DNA of 64,000 bases, from NCBI GenBank assembly GCA_965603825.1, contig CBFDEM010000054.1:124001-188000 (forward strand), in the 5' to 3' direction. Below are positions 1,086-61,500 of this stretch, in pieces (positions within the stretch are counted from its first letter, which is position 1; the number at the start of each line of letters is the position of its first letter). Position numbers and translations under genes: made by a program. The DNA comes from Blepharisma stoltei ATCC 30299 (taxonomy: Eukaryota > Protista > Ciliophora). Below the pieces are notes generated by a model. It made no database searches and was not told the DNA's origin. It saw only the letters and a list, made by a program, of their open reading frames with translations.

Positions 1086-4000
1086 ATGGATATTAACACA
1101 CTAAAAATGTCTGAGATCTATAGCAGAGTGGCACAGCTTCTCTCACTAACGTATTCAGGCATGCCTGACCAAATAAAGCCAGCTGAAGATGAGCTTAAAA
1201 TCATAAGCCAAGATACACAAGGATTCCTGCAATGCTTATTAGCCATAATCCAAGCTCCAGAATCTCATCAATTACTTAGATCTGCTTCAGCTACAAGATT
1301 TCGCCATTTAATAAGGGAATCTATTACAGCTGGAAAATTATCAGTCGAGACTCGTTCTTGGCTGGTCGAAGCTATTTTTCAAACGCTCATATCTCCCTAC
1401 ACAGATCGTAGCTCACGAGGAGTCTTAAACTTTGCCTTAAACCCTATCCTTGGTGAAGACGGACTCGGAGTATTCACAAATAGACTTGCATCTTTAGCAA
1501 TTACCGGACTAAGTGGTGAAGGAACCCAAATCCAAGGCAGCTTGTTGGTAATAAAATCAATTTTCAGCAGCATGACTCCACAATTCCAATCTGCAGACTA
1601 TTCAAAGATACTGATACCTCACCTTGTAGAAGTCGGCAAAAAAGGGCTTTACATGATTTCTTCAGGCCTGCAGAGTACCAATGAGCCACTTATTACTGAA
1701 GGAATAAATATTTTAGAAGACTGGACGTCAAGCTTAAGACAAATCCTGGAACATTTTGAAGTTACGTCTACAAAAAACATAAAAGACCTGTCAGAACAAA
1801 GTGAAATTGCTTTATTGTTTTCAAATATCATTAATTTCGCAATCCCTGACTACCAGGTACAAAATTCCATTATAAATATCACAGAAACCCCTATCACCAA
1901 GCCTATGAACAATATAAAAGTGAATATTTTAAAAAGCCTCAACATAATTATCCAATATTTAATTGATTTCAAGAAAAAAAATATAGAAGAACAAGGGAAT
2001 TTCCCCCTTATAACTGTAATAGGGACTGATCTGCCTGATTCCCCATTTTTATCCTGTGCACTAAGCATAACTGAGCCGCTAATTATATCAATACTATCAA
2101 TATCCACACATGCAGAAATTGAAGCTTTCCTGGCAAGGGATTTTATTACAGAATTAATGATAGAAACCTTAAGTTTTTTCCACAAGGTCGGCTATGAAAG
2201 GCGATTTTATACGATTTTTTCTCAATATCACCGACAATTAATAGTAAATGTATGTTTCCAGTTTATAAGGATTTATGAAAAAGATAAAGAACTTTTTATG
2301 ACAGACCCAGAAGAATTTGCGGCAAGCACACAAGATATGTGTGAGCGGCAAGAGTCAGAAACCACCAAAACGACGTCAGCGCAGCTGCTAGAAACGCTTT
2401 GTGACGCTATTGATGGCGCCCTTGCGTTTACAGCTTATTTTGTCCAGCAAATCACAGATATGATTTTATCTGGGAAAGGGAGAGAAGGGATTATGGATTA
2501 TAATATAATCAGAGACTTCACTGATTTTCCCTTTATGAGCTTAGATGAGGAAACCAAAATAGAAACCTCCTTTATGGTCCTCAGTATCCTATCATTTCCT
2601 ATATTACGTAGAAAAGATATATTGAACTCTATCGAGGATTTATTGGTAAATCACATGGAAAGACTGTTTTCGACCACGTCAGGGATCATCCAGAGCAGGA
2701 TTTGTTTGTTTTTTTATTTTTATTCAGACAGTATTTTTATTGAAAGATCTCACCATTTCCAGACTTGTATGAATTTTTTAATCAGCTGTATTTCTCCGAA
2801 TTGCCATAAAGCGGTTAATATTCAGGCTTGTGAAACTTTTTCGTTTATGATGCAAGATGAAGAAATTTTATTTAGGTTTGAGCCTTTTATAGATGAAGTC
2901 ATTGATAAAATAATACAGGGGATTGAAAACCAGACTGAAAAAAACTTTTTTGAAGCACTGGTAGAGATGACACAAAATTTCAGTGACGCTTTGGCAAGAA
3001 AAATAATCCCATTAATAGCTGGGATTGTAAAAAAAATCCAAATTGAGACACAAAATTTGGTTATGGGGAATAAAAAAGAAACAATTATTTTGCTTAAGCT
3101 TTGGAATGTCATAAGGACACTCATTATGTCTCCTTCAATAGAAAAAGCTCAGCTAGTAGAATTTGAAAAACATTTGGCCCCGATTTTAAGCTATTTGCAG
3201 ATTCCTCACCAAATTACCTTTGTGGATGATATTATTAATGTTGTGGTCTGCATAATGAAAAAAACAAAAAATGTGACTGATATTGAATGGGAAATTTTCA
3301 GCAAACTGCCTGAAATTCAAGCAAGCCAAGACAACTCTTTGCAGTGCTTATTTAAGCTGCTGAATTTATATCTAATGTACGGAAAAGACCACCTTCAAGA
3401 ATTCCCTCAAAAATTGGCAGTAGTTTTAGATATGGCTGGAAAAGCCATGTTTGCTACTTATAAAGGAAAAACCAGAGAAAGTGTAAACTCTGAAGGGGCG
3501 ATTTTATACCAGCTGGCTCTTTATAACTATGCTGGCTACATCGACCACCAACTTAACCAAATATTTTCCAACGCAATCGTAAGGTACCTTCAAGGCACAA
3601 CCCAAAGCTTTTTCAAGGTCAGGCTTCTCGGCATTATTTTGGCAGGTTTTACATATAATACAAATTTAGCCTGCTCTATCCTATCCCAGCAGTCAACTGA
3701 CACAGGAATCACTTATCTTCGCTTTGTCCTGCTCCAAATAATCAATAATTCCACTCTTTTTGTGCATTCTTATGACAAACGTGTCGCAGTCATCGGTCTC
3801 TGCTCCATAATTTCTTTATCAGAGCTCCCAAATGATATAGCTGAGTCCATAAGCCAAATTTTTGAAGCCTTAATTGTAATCCTCAGTCAAAAAATGGAAG
3901 ACAAAGGCTCAAAAGAAAAAACCAAAGCAATGGACGCCCTAATAGAGCAGCTTTTTAAGTCTGACGAAGAAGACGATTTTGATAATGAAATTATCGTCAA

Positions 4001-4310
4001 AGGGACCAAACTTTTATATGGAGAAAGCGGGGCTGACGCTTTATCTAAAACAGAAGAAAATGAGGCTAATTTATTATTAAGCCAAATTAATACGCCAATA
4101 CAAATTATAGACGAATATGAATATTTCAGAGGAACTTTGGCGACTATTAAGTCAAAAAACCAAGAAAACGTAAAAAGACTGTTCGCAGGGCTGAGCCCAC
4201 AAAGAAGGGAGCAGCTACTTGAAATCATGCAGTCCCAAAGGGTACAAGTGAACGACCTGCCAGGCGAAAACACCATTGTGAGAAAAATAGTTAAAGCTAA
4301 GCATAGGTAG
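1086..4310 (+). CDS. Importin-beta family karyopherin (importin-7/8-like, HEAT repeats)
   Basis: 1074-aa helical ORF with an N-terminal IBN_N-like segment (AEDELK...LRSASAT.F), ELFMTDPEEF, HSYDKRVAVIGL and an acidic loop near the C-terminus. TAG stop. Confidence 0.75.
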   Translation: MDINTLKMSEIYSRVAQLLSLTYSGMPDQIKPAEDELKIISQDTQGFLQCLLAIIQAPESHQLLRSASATRFRHLIRESITAGKLSVETRSWLVEAIFQTLISPYTDRSSRGVLNFALNPILGEDGLGVFTNRLASLAITGLSGEGTQIQGSLLVIKSIFSSMTPQFQSADYSKILIPHLVEVGKKGLYMISSGLQSTNEPLITEGINILEDWTSSLRQILEHFEVTSTKNIKDLSEQSEIALLFSNIINFAIPDYQVQNSIINITETPITKPMNNIKVNILKSLNIIIQYLIDFKKKNIEEQGNFPLITVIGTDLPDSPFLSCALSITEPLIISILSISTHAEIEAFLARDFITELMIETLSFFHKVGYERRFYTIFSQYHRQLIVNVCFQFIRIYEKDKELFMTDPEEFAASTQDMCERQESETTKTTSAQLLETLCDAIDGALAFTAYFVQQITDMILSGKGREGIMDYNIIRDFTDFPFMSLDEETKIETSFMVLSILSFPILRRKDILNSIEDLLVNHMERLFSTTSGIIQSRICLFFYFYSDSIFIERSHHFQTCMNFLISCISPNCHKAVNIQACETFSFMMQDEEILFRFEPFIDEVIDKIIQGIENQTEKNFFEALVEMTQNFSDALARKIIPLIAGIVKKIQIETQNLVMGNKKETIILLKLWNVIRTLIMSPSIEKAQLVEFEKHLAPILSYLQIPHQITFVDDIINVVVCIMKKTKNVTDIEWEIFSKLPEIQASQDNSLQCLFKLLNLYLMYGKDHLQEFPQKLAVVLDMAGKAMFATYKGKTRESVNSEGAILYQLALYNYAGYIDHQLNQIFSNAIVRYLQGTTQSFFKVRLLGIILAGFTYNTNLACSILSQQSTDTGITYLRFVLLQIINNSTLFVHSYDKRVAVIGLCSIISLSELPNDIAESISQIFEALIVILSQKMEDKGSKEKTKAMDALIEQLFKSDEEDDFDNEIIVKGTKLLYGESGADALSKTEENEANLLLSQINTPIQIIDEYEYFRGTLATIKSKNQENVKRLFAGLSPQRREQLLEIMQSQRVQVNDLPGENTIVRKIVKAKHR

Positions 4311-4313
4311 TAA

Positions 4314-5414
4314 CTATATATTTTCTTTATTTTTAACAATTCGGGGTATTTCCCACACTCGATAGCTTTCCGGGAGCTTTTCGCAGCAGTATTGGTATAG
4401 GTTTCCTACAAATCCTTTGCTGAAAGGACTTTGGCTGCCTTCCGGCCAGTTTTTTAAATAGGAAATTTTGCTTCAAGACATGATTTCCCAAGTAGTTACA
4501 TTGTGCAGGGCAAGATAGCTGTGAAAGCCTAATAAACAAGTAACCATCAGTGTGAAAAACAATAGTACAATCATAAGCAAAAGTCTAAGCCAATTCTCCA
4601 CAAGCCAATATATAACAGAAGAGCTTGACTCAAAACTGAGAATATTCTAAATAACTTATACCCAAATATTAGCCCACCACAGCTGTATACATTGGACAAC
4701 TAAATATCAGTAAAAATAAAACCTGTTTTTCTCTCCTACACAAACGCCTAGCCATGGACAATGATGGTCATGCAAAGCTACACATCTTCGGCACTCTTTA
4801 CAATGTTTTGCGCGGATAGGCTGCTCTAGGTTGCAGACCGTGCAAAATCTGGTTTCTACTATAATAATATCCTCTGATGGTTCAATTTTTATGATGCTTT
4901 CATTGTCTCTGTCTCGCTGTGTTTCTATTTCTTCTTCATGGATTTCTTGAGGGTAAGAGTTGATCTCTTGATCTCCATTATTGTGAGGCTCTTTTGGACG
5001 ATCACTATCTTGGATTGTTGACAAGCACTTTTCAGGCTTTGCTAATAAGTCCTGGGGATTTTCTTCATTGAGAGCAATAAAGGATAGCCCAGATGTAGGA
5101 TTTCCGAATGTTTTTTTGCATTCTTTCACTTCTATTGAAAAATCTTGAGAAGCCTGCTCGATGGTTTTGGCGTTGTTTTTGTCTAGGTTTGTATTTGTTA
5201 TTGGGTAGTTGATAAAGCCAGGGTTTTTCAAGCTTGTTAAGGAGTATAAGAAAACTTTTAGAATAGAAATAATCCAGAATGAAATAGTATCGACCGATTC
5301 TAAGTCTGCGAAATATTCACTGCTAAAAAAAAGTGCAAAAAGCATTGTCATATCAAATAGCAACATCAGGACCGGGGTTTTTATTCCTTAATAAGTCTTA
5401 CTTCTAAGTTCCAT
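4314..5414 (-). CDS. DHHC palmitoyltransferase, 356 aa, 2 introns, TGA=Trp
   Basis: FCTVC...[30 protein letters not shown] and a downstream NVTTWE motif. Exons 5414-5402, 5386-4662 and 4646-4314 total 1071 nt. Confidence 0.92.
4647..4661 (-). other. 15-nt spliceosomal intron
   Basis: GTATAAGTTATTTAG. Carries an in-frame TAA; removal restores the DHHC frame. Confidence 0.9.
5387..5401 (-). other. 15-nt spliceosomal intron
   Basis: GTAAGACTTATTAAG. Carries an in-frame TAA; removal links ATG 5414 to the ORF. Confidence 0.8.
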
Positions 5415-5495
5415 AATTCTTTTACAAAAATTAAATTAATTGTAAGTTTTCAATAGAACTAGGTTTATTAGTCGTTAAATTGTTTTTAGTCATGG

Positions 5496-5957
5496 TTACT
5501 CTTCTACACCTATTTTATCTTCAAAAAGATATTTAGTATGCTTTCCCATAGCTACAAGCCGCTGCCTGATCCAAATTTCAGCAGAGGTAAATGCCAATGT
5601 CTTGCCAACTTTATTGCACTCAGCAATAATGGTGAGCTCTTCTCCAACTAAAGCAGCAGAAATATAAGTAACTGATAAATCAACGCTTACTGTTCTGCGC
5701 CCATCTCGGTCAGCTGCAAAAATAGCCCACGTCGTAAATTGGTCAATAGCTGTAGCAATAGCACCGCCGTGCATTGGTCCGAAAGTATTCGAGAATTCTT
5801 GCAAAACAGGGAGCTTAACTACAAGTTTTGTGGATTCTGGGCCTTTTTCTGCACTCTCAATTCTTGCATGCTGAATCATTAACTTGTCAAAGAACATAGG
5901 TGGCGTAGTCTTGCTTTGGAGAAATGTGGCAAGCTTTTGCACTTTTGCTAGGGCCAT
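5496..5957 (-). CDS. Hotdog-fold acyl-CoA thioesterase (ACOT13/PaaI-like)
   Basis: NTFGPMHGGAIATAID, VSVDLSVTYISAA and KVGKTLAFTSAEI motifs. Confidence 0.9.
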   Translation of the reverse strand: MALAKVQKLATFLQSKTTPPMFFDKLMIQHARIESAEKGPESTKLVVKLPVLQEFSNTFGPMHGGAIATAIDQFTTWAIFAADRDGRRTVSVDLSVTYISAALVGEELTIIAECNKVGKTLAFTSAEIWIRQRLVAMGKHTKYLFEDKIGVEE

Positions 5958-10719: not shown

Positions 10720-11268
10720 TTAATAATCCCAATTAAGTACATATCTCACGAAATTTTCCCAAAAAGAGGCATATCTTCTAGGTGTTTTCTTAATAAACTG
10801 CGACGTGTGAATTACTTCTTCTAAAGGGTTAGGATACGGTATCCTGTCTTGCTGTGTAATTATATCGCTTCTGACTGGCTTCACCCCAATCATTGTGTTG
10901 TCCACCACTACTTGTCCATTATGAACAAGTGCTTTTATTGCGTCTTCGCTGTTTTTGAACCGAATAGTCATCCAATTGCCTTTCCCAGGCCTGATTTCTT
11001 CAATATCTCCAATGATTTTGAATTTCCTTATGACTTGGTCTTTTAAATCCAAAGGGAAACCAAAAACAATTATAGAGTTATCTGGGTCGTCGTATGAAGG
11101 TGGAGGGGATTTCGTTTGAGTGTGTGGCTGGAACATTGAAGATCGTGACGGTGGTGGCTGAAGCCTTGCTCGTGAAGGTGGAGGAGTTGTAGAACGGGTG
11201 AAGGTTCGGAGGACTGCAGGAGTCTCAAACATAGAGGGAGAGAGGAATTCTTCCCGGCTTTTATTCAT
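10720..11268 (-). CDS. NUP35: Nucleoporin Nup35/Nup53-like
   Basis: Atypical RRM (IIVFGFP...GNWMTIRF...ALVHNG...MIGVKPV) plus a C-terminal amphipathic helix FWENFVRYVLNW. Confidence 0.85.
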   Translation of the reverse strand: MNKSREEFLSPSMFETPAVLRTFTRSTTPPPSRARLQPPPSRSSMFQPHTQTKSPPPSYDDPDNSIIVFGFPLDLKDQVIRKFKIIGDIEEIRPGKGNWMTIRFKNSEDAIKALVHNGQVVVDNTMIGVKPVRSDIITQQDRIPYPNPLEEVIHTSQFIKKTPRRYASFWENFVRYVLNWDY

Positions 11269-42773: not shown

Positions 42774-43130
42774 TTAAAGGTTAATAATCTGAGGTTCCAA
42801 TGAAGCTGCAAAAGTCATGATAGTGTTTACGATTTCTTGATCCACATGAAGCTCGTTCAAAGTAGCTAACAGAAATCCAGCCACTAAATCGAACTGCTCC
42901 TTAGTGATGTGGAGTCCAGTGTGCACTGGGATCATTTCTCTTCCGGTGTATGGGATACCACTACCAAGAGTATGAGAAAAGAGCTCAACTTGCATTGCCT
43001 TAGTATGATTGACATCTCTTCCGACAAAGGCTGCAGCTGTCACTGGGTTTGCAAGGATCTTAGCATAGAGTCCATCTATGACGGCAACTACAGCTGCGTG
43101 TCCACCAACTCTCTCGTAAATAGTTGCCAT
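42774..43130 (-). CDS. Group I truncated haemoglobin, copy 2
   Basis: YERVGG, LY, AF, QVELF, YTGREMIPVHTGL. Confidence 0.92.
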   Translation of the reverse strand: MATIYERVGGHAAVVAVIDGLYAKILANPVTAAAFVGRDVNHTKAMQVELFSHTLGSGIPYTGREMIPVHTGLHITKEQFDLVAGFLLATLNELHVDQEIVNTIMTFAASLEPQIINL

Positions 43131-43659: not shown

Positions 43660-44016
43660 TTAGAGGTTAATTATTTCACTCTCTAAGCCGCCTGCATGTG
43701 CCATGACTGCATTGACATATGCTTCATCGAGATTAAGCTCTCTTAAAGTGGCCAAAAGGAACCCAGCAACCAAATCGAATTGCTCTTTGGAGAGGTTAAG
43801 TCCTCTATGGCCGTCTGCCATTGACCTTCCAGTGTAAGGTGTCCCACTTCCTAACCATTCAGACCAATACTCAACTTGCATGGCCTTGACATGGTTCACA
43901 TCTTTCCCAGCGAATGCAGCTGCTGTGATTGGGTTTGCAAGAATCTTTGAGTATAATCCGTCAATTAGAGCCACCACTGCATTGTGTCCACCAACTCTTT
44001 CGAAATTCGTTGCCAT
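43660..44016 (-). CDS. Group I truncated haemoglobin, copy 3
   Basis: FERVGG, LY, AF, QVEYW, YTGRSMADGHRGL. Confidence 0.92.
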   Translation of the reverse strand: MATNFERVGGHNAVVALIDGLYSKILANPITAAAFAGKDVNHVKAMQVEYWSEWLGSGTPYTGRSMADGHRGLNLSKEQFDLVAGFLLATLRELNLDEAYVNAVMAHAGGLESEIINL

Positions 44017-46640: not shown

Positions 46641-46929
46641 TTTTCATATATTATCAGTTCATTTTATATCAGAGTTTCTTATTATCAATAAAAATTTATA
46701 AAATATTTTGATAAGAGACCATAACTATGGGATTTTATCTGTTGTTAATAATTTTTATAACAAAAACTTTGAGTTTTTATAAATCGATGTGGCATTATTT
46801 TAAATTCATATTTTTGCTTATAAATTTGCTTTAGAACTTATATTGAATAAGGAAATATTTTTAATTAGACTACCTATTAGGTTTGTGAAGTCTGAAGTCC
46901 ATATTGCATTTCATTATAATAATTAAATG

Positions 46930-46989
46930 GTGATGATCCTTACGCTGGAATTACCAACTGCATCCAGATGAAAAATCAATGCTCTCTGA
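46930..46989 (+). ncRNA. Box C/D snoRNA 1 (snR77/SNORD65-like guide for SSU rRNA)
   Basis: Box C GTGATGA 46930-36. Guide GCTGGAATTACC 46944-55 is antisense to conserved SSU GGTAATTCCAGC. D' CTGC, C' CAGATGA, D CTGA 46986-89. Confidence 0.85.
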
Positions 46990-47005
46990 TTTTATAAACC
47001 ACAAA

Positions 47006-47061
47006 CTGATGACAACTGTTCAGTTCTGCTTCAGAATTTTGACGACATCATACTGCCCTGA
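47006..47061 (+). ncRNA. Box C/D snoRNA 2 (U38/snR61-like guide for LSU rRNA)
   Basis: Box C cTGATGA. Guide CAGTTCTGCTT 47021-31 is antisense to LSU AAGCAGAACTG. D' CAGA, C' TTGACGA, D CTGA 47058-61. Confidence 0.85.
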
Positions 47062-47077
47062 TTCATATTCTCTTAAG

Positions 47078-47130
47078 TTGATGACTTTTCTAGAATTACC
47101 CTGTCAATGATGACAATTCCTCGTTTCTGA
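47078..47130 (+). ncRNA. Box C/D snoRNA 3 (double guide, two SSU rRNA sites)
   Basis: Box C tTGATGA. Guide TCTAGAATTACC 47089-100 matches SSU GGTAATTCTAGA. D' CTGT, C' ATGATGA. Guide AATTCCTCGTT 47115-25 matches SSU AACGAGGAATT. D CTGA. Confidence 0.88.
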
Positions 47131-47148
47131 CCCATTTATAACTTTATA

Positions 47149-47202
47149 CTGATGATAATTTACTCTGATTCATTGATGAATCTTTTCCACCAAGATCGCT
47201 GA
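47149..47202 (+). ncRNA. Box C/D snoRNA 4 (U24/SNORD24-like)
   Basis: Box C cTGATGA, D' CTGA 47165-68, C' TTGATGA. The 3' end CCACCAAGATCGCTGA is the U24 signature, antisense to LSU GATCTTGGTGG. Confidence 0.88.
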
Positions 47203-47313
47203 CTTTTATATTGTCTTTATTTTCTTAATTTCATCCATTATTAAATAAGCTCTTTATTTATTAGATTGCCTGATTTTGCTGTCTTTCAAGCGAGTTGCCA
47301 TTTAGTATGGCCA

Positions 47314-47385: not shown

Positions 47386-47722
47386 TATAAAAGAATCAGC
47401 AGAGTGTTGTCAATGATATATGCTCAATATAGGATAAAATGAAAAATATCTTATCTAATCTAATCTGATCTATCGATTAAACAGACAAAACGGTCCTTAT
47501 AGGCCATGAATCGCTGACATTTGAGGATTCATGTACGGATGGTTTTGATATGTATCGTATTCTCTAAAAAAAATTCTTCGAATTGCTTGACTGGTTTGGA
47601 TACTTAAAATATTGCAAAATTAAGCTTCTAGTTCTGTATTTTAAATTTAATAAAACAAAAGTTTACCAATTATTTATATGTGATTTATGCTATATCAACA
47701 CCGAAATATTCCATATAATAAA

Positions 47723-58500: not shown

Positions 58501-61500
58501 ATCATCAGAGCGACCCTTTTCCCTCCTGGCCCACCGACCATATCTTTTCTCTTCGAATCTAGCTTGCTCATAATTGTATTTTGTGTCTGAATAGAAGAAG
58601 TCTGTGCCGAAAAAGTCAAAAAAACAGGGAATAAATTTTCATTTTCCTTCATATAATATAAAGTGTCTGTAATTATGACGGTTTTTCCGACACCAGTAGA
58701 GCCTGTAATGAAAACAGGCTTGTGGACTTTTATTTGGGTCCTTAAAATGTATGCGAACCTTACAGTATCTTTGGTAGGGACGACAAGCTCGAAAAAGGAA
58801 ATCGCTGGATCATATAGAAAATCTGGCTTGATTTTTTCCCATTGCTTGTAATCGCCACCAATTTTGTCAGGGCTTACAAAGGAGTCAAATAATGACCCTC
58901 TGGGAAGATCAAAAGAAAATTCACTGCTCATGCTTGATTCAAACTTAAGCTGGCTATTATTGTCAAGAGCTCCTCCTAATCCCCACATAAAGCAGAACAT
59001 AAACAGCTTTTCTAGATATTTTTTAAACTGATCTGGCTCGTCTTTTAGCCTTGGGCAGTCTTCTTCTAACGTCAAAGCTTTTATAAGTGAACAAGTGCTC
59101 ATCACCAAGCTCATATCCATAGTCGGAATCGGCTCAAAAAGCCCTTTTCTAATCACAGCAATTCCTTTTTCAACATACTTTTCAAACAAATATTTCAAAA
59201 AAGTCCTATTTTCTTCAGACCACTCAGGAAGATTTACATCAACCCAGGTCATCACATATGGTTTCCAGCCTACAGCTTCCAGGTTCATATAAACCATCCC
59301 ACACCTTGAAACAGTTGCAGGAGAAGCTACAGCTAAATCTTGGACCTCAAAAAGCATCCTCATTTCATTTTTCAGCTTAATTCTTTGTCCATTTGCTAAG
59401 CACAGCATCATGTTATCGTCAAGCACAGTATTCATATTTTCAATCCAAAGAGAATCGACAGGTCCATCAAATACGACCCATCTTCTGTTATTGTCTTCTC
59501 GCTCGCTGTAATTTCTCATTATAGAGCTGGCTAGACCGTCTTTTCAGTCTTGAGTCACTTCATTGTACTCTCCATAAAGCTCGCCCATGTTGATAGCTTT
59601 GGGGTTAAGGACTTTGTACTCGACTTCTTGGAAATTTTGGTTTTTGGAATTTTTGTTGGCTCGGAGGTGGGTCATGGCTTTAGCGAGTACTCTGTAGCAG
59701 GTTGATTTTCCAGCAGTGGCTGGGCCGACGATCATAACTCCGAATCTGACTGAAAAGGTCTCGTAGAGCTGAATTACTTTTTCAATGAATTTTGGTTCTG
59801 GCTGCAGCTTATCTTTTTTAATGATTTCTATGATACTTTCTTGGAGCTCGCCATAGTCTACAAATGGGACTTCTACGCCTGGGAATAAATCTTGGACAAT
59901 TGCAAAGAATAAAATTAGATCTTCTTTTAAGAACTTTGGGACGTTGGAATCTCTCATAGCTCGAATCAGCACAACTTCTTCTGAAAGGTCTGGGTCTTTT
60001 CTTTTTAACGCCCCAGCCATATTCAGCACACTTTTTACAGCCCTCATTCCAAAGTCATAATGGTCCTGCTGTGAAAGCTGCTCTGACGACAGTTTATAAA
60101 GTTTCGTCATTTTGCCTGACAATCTTTTAGCTTCACTAAACCCTTCTGCAAAAAGCATAATTTCAGCAATCAAGGTATAGTCAGGAACCATCATAGACAT
60201 AGGCCTAAACAAGACTTTTAAGTTGTCAGGAAGCTCAGTTCTACCTGCATATCCAGGGTTCATAGTAATAAAGACACCCATAGTATCCACAAGATAAGAA
60301 TGTTTATCATCTAAATAAAATTCGGTCTTCTTTTCCCATCGGGCAGTACTAATAGTTCTCAGCTGTTGTCCAATAACTGACAGCACTTCTATATCAATTC
60401 TGTTGAACTCGTCCAGACATGACCATGACCCAGTATTACAAAGACCTAGAAACAGCTTTTCCATCATCATAAATGTGATTTGTTCAGAGCAGTTAAATAC
60501 GATGCAATACTGGCCTACTGCTTTGGCTAGATCTTTAACACTTTCAGTTTTCCCTGTTCCTGCTGGTCCTGCGGGGGAGGCGCCTAGCTTGATATGAAGA
60601 GCGCCTGTAATGGTCATCCAGCATCTATCAGTCAAAGGTGTAATGACTAGCCTAGTCGTAGCGCCCATATATTCATAGCCATAATATAGCACTGAATTAA
60701 CCTGCTTTATTGTGCAATCTTCTTGTTCGGAAGCAAAATAGTACCTTAATTGTTGCTGCCACCTGAAATCATTCATGCTAGATACTTCATTGTCCTTTAA
60801 ATTTTCTATGATATCACGATTATGCACGTCCTGAGTCACTAATGCTACAACTGATCTTCTTTGGATATTATTTAAATCAGTCCTGACAAGCACTGTCAAT
60901 TCTTCTAGCTGAGACACATTAGTTTCATACCAGTCTGCAAGGGCTTCAGATGCTCCATCTTTGTTCGTCAATGCTTCTTCTGTGGAATAAGTCCACATGA
61001 TATTGCCTACACATGATACTATCTGTGCAAAGTGCCCAATAACCCATTCCGGCCTATTTTGGTCATCATAAGACCCATATCCTTCTTTAATTTCTCTTCT
61101 CAAGCTCTTTTTCATATCTCCTTCGACAACACCTAGCCACTCTTCTACGCTCCCTCTAGCTTTTAGGTTTCTTGAAAGCGGAATTCTTTCGCCCTCTGCC
61201 GAAATCATAGCATAAATGTCTTCTCCTCTGTGCTCGCTGCCAAAATCAAGCTGATAAATGCTTTCAAAAATTTTCCTCAAATGTGGCTGGACTGCAGACG
61301 GTACTTTTGCTTGTGCCAAAATTTCTAGTAATTCATCATTAGACAAAAAGAAAAATCTTGGGAATTGTTTACGTTTTTTATCTAAATAGTCTTCTAATGC
61401 TTTTTGGATTTGTTCTAACTTTGTGTTATAGTCTTTAAGCTCTTTAAAAAGATTAGGCTGTGTAGCTATAGGTAATGCCAAAGTCCTTTCGCTGACGTTT

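Follow-up and report, generated by a model that had tools for sequence, protein, structure and literature searches.

What is encoded by an intergenic segment of the Blepharisma stoltei ATCC 30299 genome in which the motifs of box C/D snoRNAs recur four times in close succession, and would it be expressed as a single transcript? The macronuclear genome of this strain was reported as a 41-Mbp assembly with 66% AT (PMC9942806), and the genome used for our searches comprises 41.46 Mb in 64 contigs. Contig ends of this assembly carry long runs of CCCTAACA, a repeat of the type reported as the telomere unit of Blepharisma (PMC9942806). The segment lies in a stretch of 64,000 nt, which we call the window. 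The reading we prefer, and to which we assign a probability of about 0.8, is that the macronuclear genome here carries four miniaturised box C/D snoRNA genes as a free-standing cluster, which would be expressed as one short precursor and would guide rRNA methylation. Here, we describe the array, its predicted targets in the rRNA and its relatives, and discuss how it might be transcribed and processed.

Architecture of the array

Mapping of boxes and guides by coordinate places four box C/D units head to tail on one strand, at 46931-47202, each in the order C, guide, D′, C′, guide, D (Table 1). Measured from C to D, units 1 to 4 are 59, 55, 52 and 53 nt long; they stand 17, 17 and 19 nt apart (D box to following C box), and the linkers between D′ and C′ are only 3-5 nt long. 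All four units have TGATGA as their C box and CTGA as their D box, and a purine precedes the C box in unit 1 only. TGATGA occurs six times in these 272 nt, where 0.11 would be expected at the window-wide rate (Poisson P ~3e-9). The flanks, examined by eye, offer scattered A-U or G-U pairs at most for a terminal 5′/3′ stem, and folding of the whole array against shuffled sequences gave no excess structure (z = -0.33). No ORF of at least 50 aa (table 11), or of at least 70 aa when TGA is read as Trp, overlaps the array. The initial annotation, which had described four same-strand units in tandem lying outside the predicted ORFs, is thus borne out by box order, coordinates and ORF content.

Table 1. 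Coordinates of the array and its upstream block in the window, with guide duplexes as base-paired to the rRNA of the same genome
Feature	Position	Strand	Boxes	Guides and remarks
Block common to both arrays	46891..47225	+		Found by blastn and alignment; flanks outside it unrelated
USE-like motif GTCCATATT	46897..46905	+		Candidate promoter element
Unit 1, snR77/snoR77Y-like	46931..46989	+	C 46931-36; D′ CTGC 46958-61; C′ AGATGA 46966-71; D 46986-89	D′ guide 46944-46955, 12 perfect bp, predicted target SSU U544; D guide orphan
Spacer 1	46990..47006	+		17 nt
Unit 2, snR61/Z1/U38-like	47007..47061	+	C 47007-12; D′ CAGA 47032-35; C′ TGACGA 47040-45; D 47058-61	D′ guide 47020-47031, 12 bp with 1 G-U, predicted target LSU A1020; D guide orphan
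Spacer 2	47062..47078	+		17 nt
Unit 3, double guide (U45-like D′, snR57-like D)	47079..47130	+	C 47079-84; D′ CTGT 47101-04; C′ TGATGA 47108-13; D 47127-30	D′ guide 47088-47099, 12 bp with 1 G-U, predicted target SSU A151; D guide 47115-47125, 11 perfect bp, predicted target SSU G1520
Spacer 3	47131..47149	+		19 nt; 3′ 14 nt identical in paralogue
Unit 4, U24/SNORD24-like	47150..47202	+	C 47150-55; D′ CTGA 47165-68; C′ TGATGA 47174-79; D 47199-202	D guide 47187-47197, 11 perfect bp, predicted target LSU C1315; D′ guide short (9 nt), targetless

Elsewhere in the window, two adjacent 118-aa ORFs on the minus strand (42774-43130 and 43660-44016) have very similar N-termini (MAT..ERVGGH..VVA.IDGLY.KI). 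Judged from these sequences, they seem to be tandem duplicates of one gene, and their shared motif may resemble that of truncated haemoglobins.

Guides and their predicted targets in the rRNA

Guides were compared with one rDNA unit from the same genome (SSU 807-2537, 5.8S 2575-2717, LSU 2799-5941) by scanning the 20 nt 5′ of each D or D′ box for uninterrupted pairing to rRNA with the fifth nucleotide as anchor. Of the eight guide positions, five pair with the species' own rRNA over 11-12 bp in the correct register, a complementarity that is directly observed. All five had been proposed as perfect antisense matches; this description fits the unit 1 D′, unit 3 D and unit 4 D guides, while the D′ guides of units 2 and 3 each include one G-U pair. 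Among the remaining CTGA sites of the window, taken on both strands as a control, an anchored perfect run of at least 11 was found at 2 of 606, and no C box lies in range of either. Matches antisense to rRNA near 10991, 60831-60909 and 62910 come without C boxes and were set aside as chance.

The other three guides (unit 1 D, unit 2 D and unit 4 D′) found no target in the rRNA, its transcribed spacers or both U2 snRNA genes. None of the orphan guides, in the window copy or in the paralogous array described below, reached 10 Watson-Crick pairs in a search that covered the full rDNA unit and the two U2 genes. A second possible duplex was seen for the D guide of unit 3 (47115-47126), which can form 14 bp (2 G-U) around LSU G3073, near the LSU 3′ end. 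This duplex is probably incidental, because it shrinks to 10 bp in the paralogue. As for the rRNA genes themselves, at least 12 near-identical copies of the complete SSU gene are dispersed over 12 contigs rather than gathered in one array, and whole rDNA units are presumably dispersed likewise on those contigs.

To which known methylation sites would these targets correspond? Equivalences were placed by landmarks of the rRNA rather than by a formal alignment with yeast or human rRNA, and should be read as our assumptions. SSU U544 follows GCGG in the 530 loop, and we take it to be yeast U578 (Um578, guided by snR77), assuming as landmark that yeast G577 equals E. coli G530. SSU G1520 lies three positions before the second G of GGAAUUCC, which we take to be the position of yeast m7G1575, and would presumably equal yeast G1572 (Gm1572, snR57). 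LSU C1315, 12-13 nt before the AG that we equate with yeast A1449/G1450, is presumably yeast C1437 (Cm1437, U24), and LSU A1020 lies in what we take to be the context of yeast A1133 (Am1133, snR61/U38), GGUAAGC[A]GAACUGG. SSU A151, the second A of GUAAUUCUAGAGCUAAUAC, is assumed to equal human A159 (Am159, U45), as this is the sole numbering that fits human A166 as A and U172 as U.

In a scan with Rfam covariance models at gathering thresholds, no family passes anywhere in the window. A permissive E-value scan, which is the only source of the sub-threshold matches, aligned the guides of three units within the guide columns of their families: snoR77Y (RF01178) for unit 1 at 26.6 bits against a gathering score of 52, snosnR61 (RF00476) for unit 2 at 30.6 against 45, and SNORD24 (RF00069) for unit 4 at 23.4 against 41. 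For unit 3, SNORD45 (RF00279) gave a partial match over the D′ guide at 16.5 against 42. Scores for the paralogue are 25.8, 34.2 and 32.7 bits. The Rfam check suggested with the first description thus recovers four families with guides in the expected columns, and none at its gathering score. Guide elements, box order and predicted target sites agree with these four families, whereas the array units are ~10-25 nt shorter than the models and score 16.5-30.6 bits against 41-52. On this comparison of sequences, we regard the units as functional equivalents of the families by guide, not as formal members by score. Because no family reaches its gathering score, it is plausible that the array is missing from existing annotation, as had been suggested. 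The proposal that the five guides are aimed at what are presumably conserved 2′-O-methylation sites is supported alike by pairing with the species' own rRNA, by the paralogue and by the sub-threshold alignments.

Paralogous and related arrays

Exactly one other copy of the array exists in the genome, on contig C35, where the match covers 570179-570498 and the four-unit array falls within 570165-570500. The two loci align in a single blastn HSP of 352 columns with 81% identity. Both arrays occupy intergenic gaps of ~0.9-1.0 kb, and the genes on either side are not the same. The window array has a minus-strand PX-domain gene on one side and a plus-strand RRM gene on the other; the C35 array is antisense to both adjacent genes. 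The common block is likely to be a transcription unit together with its proximal promoter.

Divergence between the copies is unevenly distributed, an observation made directly from the alignment. Identity is 94% in the boxes and 93% in the five targeted guides, compared with 49% at orphan guide positions, 68% in the spacers and 68% in the 40 nt upstream (functional elements versus remaining columns, Fisher P = 6e-9). Boxes and targeted guides were kept while the rest drifted, and the pattern of substitutions therefore argues that both copies are under purifying selection as guide RNAs. Some guides have changed between the copies. The unit 3 D′ guide of the paralogue has a 2-nt deletion at its 3′ end and still forms 11 perfect bp, which moves the predicted target from SSU A151 in the window copy to U153. 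Furthermore, unit 4 of the paralogue carries at D′ an 11-bp guide (1 G-U) to SSU G517, a guide that the window copy lacks.

Related arrays are found outside this genome as well. A metagenome scan for the guides of units 1 and 2 at the correct distance returned two eukaryotic contigs with the same unit order and spacing, and two remaining matches that look like chance. Ga0073914_10010884 carries snR77-like, snR61-like and U24-like units in this order at 820-1030, and PR_CR_10_Liq_1_inCRDRAFT_1002529 carries a snR77-like followed by a snR61-like unit at 1670-1810. These arrays share unit order, guide registers and spacers of ~17-20 nt with the Blepharisma array; they differ in having standard-code ORFs, a higher GC content (0.41-0.42), canonical CTGA D′ boxes and no equivalent of unit 3. 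The CTGC and CAGA D′ boxes in the window align exactly with the canonical CTGA D′ boxes of the homologous metagenome units. The same order and spacing on these contigs indicate that neither the linkage nor the tight spacing is peculiar to this lineage.

A genome-wide pattern search for a D box, a short gap, a C box and a further D box gave 533 matches against 56 in the control. As snoRNA arrays these were mostly rejected, being acidic coding repeats, and inspection of 30 loci left two with further tight snoRNA-like pairs (L035/L036 and L042). Box C/D-like units of 45-55 nt, all on the minus strand, are seen at L035 (1406-1572) and L042 (1191-1235 and 1452-1574), the last of these being a pair set 15 nt apart whose guides address SSU G359 and LSU A1754. 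Together, the 10-12 bp guides of the L042 and L035 units point to LSU U2000, SSU G359, LSU A1754 and LSU A2097.

Transcription, processing and comparison with known clusters

Co-transcription of the four units as one precursor is likely, because spacers of 17-19 nt are too short for internal promoters and because the sole conserved upstream block, which contains a USE-like motif, precedes unit 1. This motif, GTCCATATT, is identical in both array copies while the adjoining bases have diverged, and none of spacers 1-3 contains anything like it. The U3, U5 and U2 genes of this genome have GTCCCATAAC or GTCCCTTAAC at about -57 from the RNA start; we take this element to be the genome's version of the ciliate snRNA USE, which in Tetrahymena reads AAACCCATAA (PMC3273799). 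GTCCATATT looks like a one-base variant of it, and may serve as a promoter element. Its role is uncertain, because it lies ~25-34 nt from the first C box, compared with ~57 nt in the snRNA and U3 genes. An A-rich tract following GTCCCATAAC or GTCCCTTAAC is common to the upstream regions of five loci, L059 and L060 (U3), L061 (U5) and L023 and L024 (U2). As a finder of snoRNA promoters, GTCCATATT followed by TGATGA proved of little use: the genome holds 16 such matches against 1 for the control, most look coding, and convincing guides accompany the two arrays only.

Public data came from two runs of a single 2022 study, guessed to be RNA, in the form of assembled contigs, which carry no RNA-end or strand information. 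A 198-nt contig (run X1) covers 47069-47266 only, that is, units 3-4 plus 64 nt, with three differences, all downstream of the array. A 288-nt contig matches the paralogue; it begins within unit 1, ends ~21 nt beyond unit 4 and thereby bridges units 1-4. The unique flanks of the arrays have zero coverage in any run. Coverage confined to the arrays is more readily explained by transcripts than by genomic DNA at 7-22x word depth, with the caveat that the runs are taken as RNA on a guess. Of the initial suggestion of a probable polycistronic transcript, the common strand and the spacers of 17-19 nt, too short for a promoter, stand as observed, and the single precursor has good indirect support.

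In the proposed mechanism, one short precursor would start just 5′ of unit 1 under control of the USE-like element and end a few dozen nt past unit 4. Transcription is likely to be by RNA polymerase II: T4 runs lie within and between the units of the window array and T5 runs lie in the paralogue, which argues against RNA polymerase III for a read-through precursor. Snu13, Nop56, Nop58 and fibrillarin would assemble on each C/D and C′/D′ pair and thereby protect the units, while the spacers would be cut and trimmed, resulting in four RNAs of ~55-70 nt. Their 11-12 nt guides would then pair with pre-rRNA and direct 2′-O-methylation of the rRNA nucleotide facing guide position five, counted upstream from D or D′, with SSU U544, A151 and G1520 and LSU A1020 and C1315 as predicted sites.

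Several other explanations have to be weighed against this one. That the motifs are a chance arrangement or a dead pseudo-array would fit the lack of any Rfam match at threshold and an AT-rich genome with 301 CTGA sites on the plus strand of the window, and is nevertheless already contradicted by the present evidence: by the density of the C boxes alone, by five register-correct guides that match conserved sites, by the selective retention of functional elements in an old paralogue, and by homologous arrays in other eukaryotes. We therefore give it next to no weight. The units might also be real snoRNA genes, each transcribed from its own promoter, as 11 of 19 clustered snoRNAs in Tetrahymena have a USE of their own (PMC3273799). 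Spacing in those clusters is 169-421 nt, however, compared with 17-19 nt here, zero spacers hold a USE-like motif, and in the paralogue the 288-nt contig runs across from unit 1 to unit 4, so that individual promoters appear very improbable.

Could the array instead be released from a long 5′ leader in the transcript of the RRM-protein gene downstream, which would act as an intron-less host? It lies on the same strand, 475 nt 5′ of the ATG (near 47678). The paralogous array, though, shares no flanking sequence with the window copy and runs antisense to the genes on both sides, the contig of run X1 ends at 47266, well before 47678, and the conserved block stops at ~47225; we consider such a host improbable. 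A different departure from the preferred reading concerns processing, in that the array could stay partly or wholly unprocessed and accumulate as stable di- to tetra-snoRNA molecules. The very short spacers and the contigs covering several units are compatible with this, and the unusually stable multi-snoRNA products of O. tauri clusters provide a precedent (PMC7671301). The contigs are, however, equally explained by a short-lived precursor or by DNA, and each unit has the complete terminal C and D boxes that individual snoRNPs need, which makes accumulation of unprocessed molecules unlikely. A free-standing cluster expressed as one short precursor and processed to four RNAs thus remains the reading we favour, and the first description of the locus, as an intergenic array in which four box C/D snoRNAs that guide methylation follow one another in tandem, is upheld by own-rRNA pairing, the paralogue and the permissive Rfam scan.

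How does such a cluster compare with known systems? The closest comparison is Tetrahymena thermophila, where box C/D snoRNA genes form five clusters with 169-421 nt spacing and encode mostly stemless RNAs of 55-77 nt (PMC3273799). Both are ciliate macronuclear, intergenic and nearly all-C/D, with small units whose terminal stems are mostly absent in Tetrahymena and appear weak or absent in the Blepharisma array, and in Tetrahymena a CCCATAA-type USE likewise lies 5′ of snoRNA and snRNA genes (PMC3273799). They differ in that many members of the Tetrahymena clusters have their own USE (PMC3273799), while the Blepharisma array has far shorter spacers and a USE-like motif before unit 1 only, closer to the gene. 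Clustered snoRNA genes are also described from plants and Ostreococcus (PMC7671301).

The initial annotation had offered a cause for the arrangement, namely that 15-nt introns cannot host snoRNAs, and introns of heterotrichs (Blepharisma, Stentor) are indeed 15-16 nt long (bioRxiv 10.64898/2026.07.09.736142). Tiny introns are not needed as an explanation, because Tetrahymena, yeast and plants have normal introns and yet commonly carry free-standing clusters (PMC3273799, PMC7671301); as a contributing pressure they are plausible.

Polycistronic or clustered box C/D snoRNA genes are textbook knowledge in yeast, plants, trypanosomatids and Euglena, with snR72-78 and snR57-snR55-snR61 as examples of yeast polycistrons. 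Yeast and plant clusters resemble the array in lying on one strand and in addressing what are presumably equivalent conserved targets (snR77, snR61, snR57, U24). They are co-transcribed from one RNA polymerase II promoter and released by nucleases, and we infer the same for the array. They differ from it in their spacers, which contain Rnt1 stem-loops in yeast and are longer in plants. A spacer of 17-19 nt has no room for an Rnt1-type stem, and the cleavage signal must therefore be different or minimal. Archaeal box C/D sRNAs share the size (~50-60 nt), the well-formed C/D and C′/D′ boxes, the 3-5 nt D′-C′ linker and a K-loop-like geometry, whereas the array lies in a eukaryotic nuclear genome and has degenerate D′ boxes, unequal guide spacing (9-21 nt) and predicted targets at conserved sites of eukaryotic type.

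Taken further, these comparisons lead to a tentative view that we consider doubtful: that these are the tightest eukaryotic snoRNA polycistrons yet, with 17-19 nt gaps and archaeal-like units, that they mature independently of spacer structure or persist as stable multi-snoRNA particles, and that guides evolve by small indels once the entire transcription unit has been duplicated. The shift from A151 to U153 and the extra G517 guide in the paralogue would illustrate this last point.

No publication on snoRNAs of Blepharisma or Stentor turned up in full-text literature searches. Yeast, plants and other ciliates are known to have genes arranged in this way; the array is an ordinary case, if somewhat unusual in its compaction, and changes nothing in the known function of snoRNAs or their organisation in eukaryotes. 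For Blepharisma, the genome gains four well-supported box C/D snoRNA genes (eight with the paralogue), which Rfam-based annotation misses, and five or six rRNA methylation sites are predicted from the arrays. The arrays further indicate that, in a very compact genome with tiny introns, snoRNA genes can be packed with fewer than 20 nt between units, and the pair of paralogues provides a small natural experiment in how guides are gained, lost and shifted.
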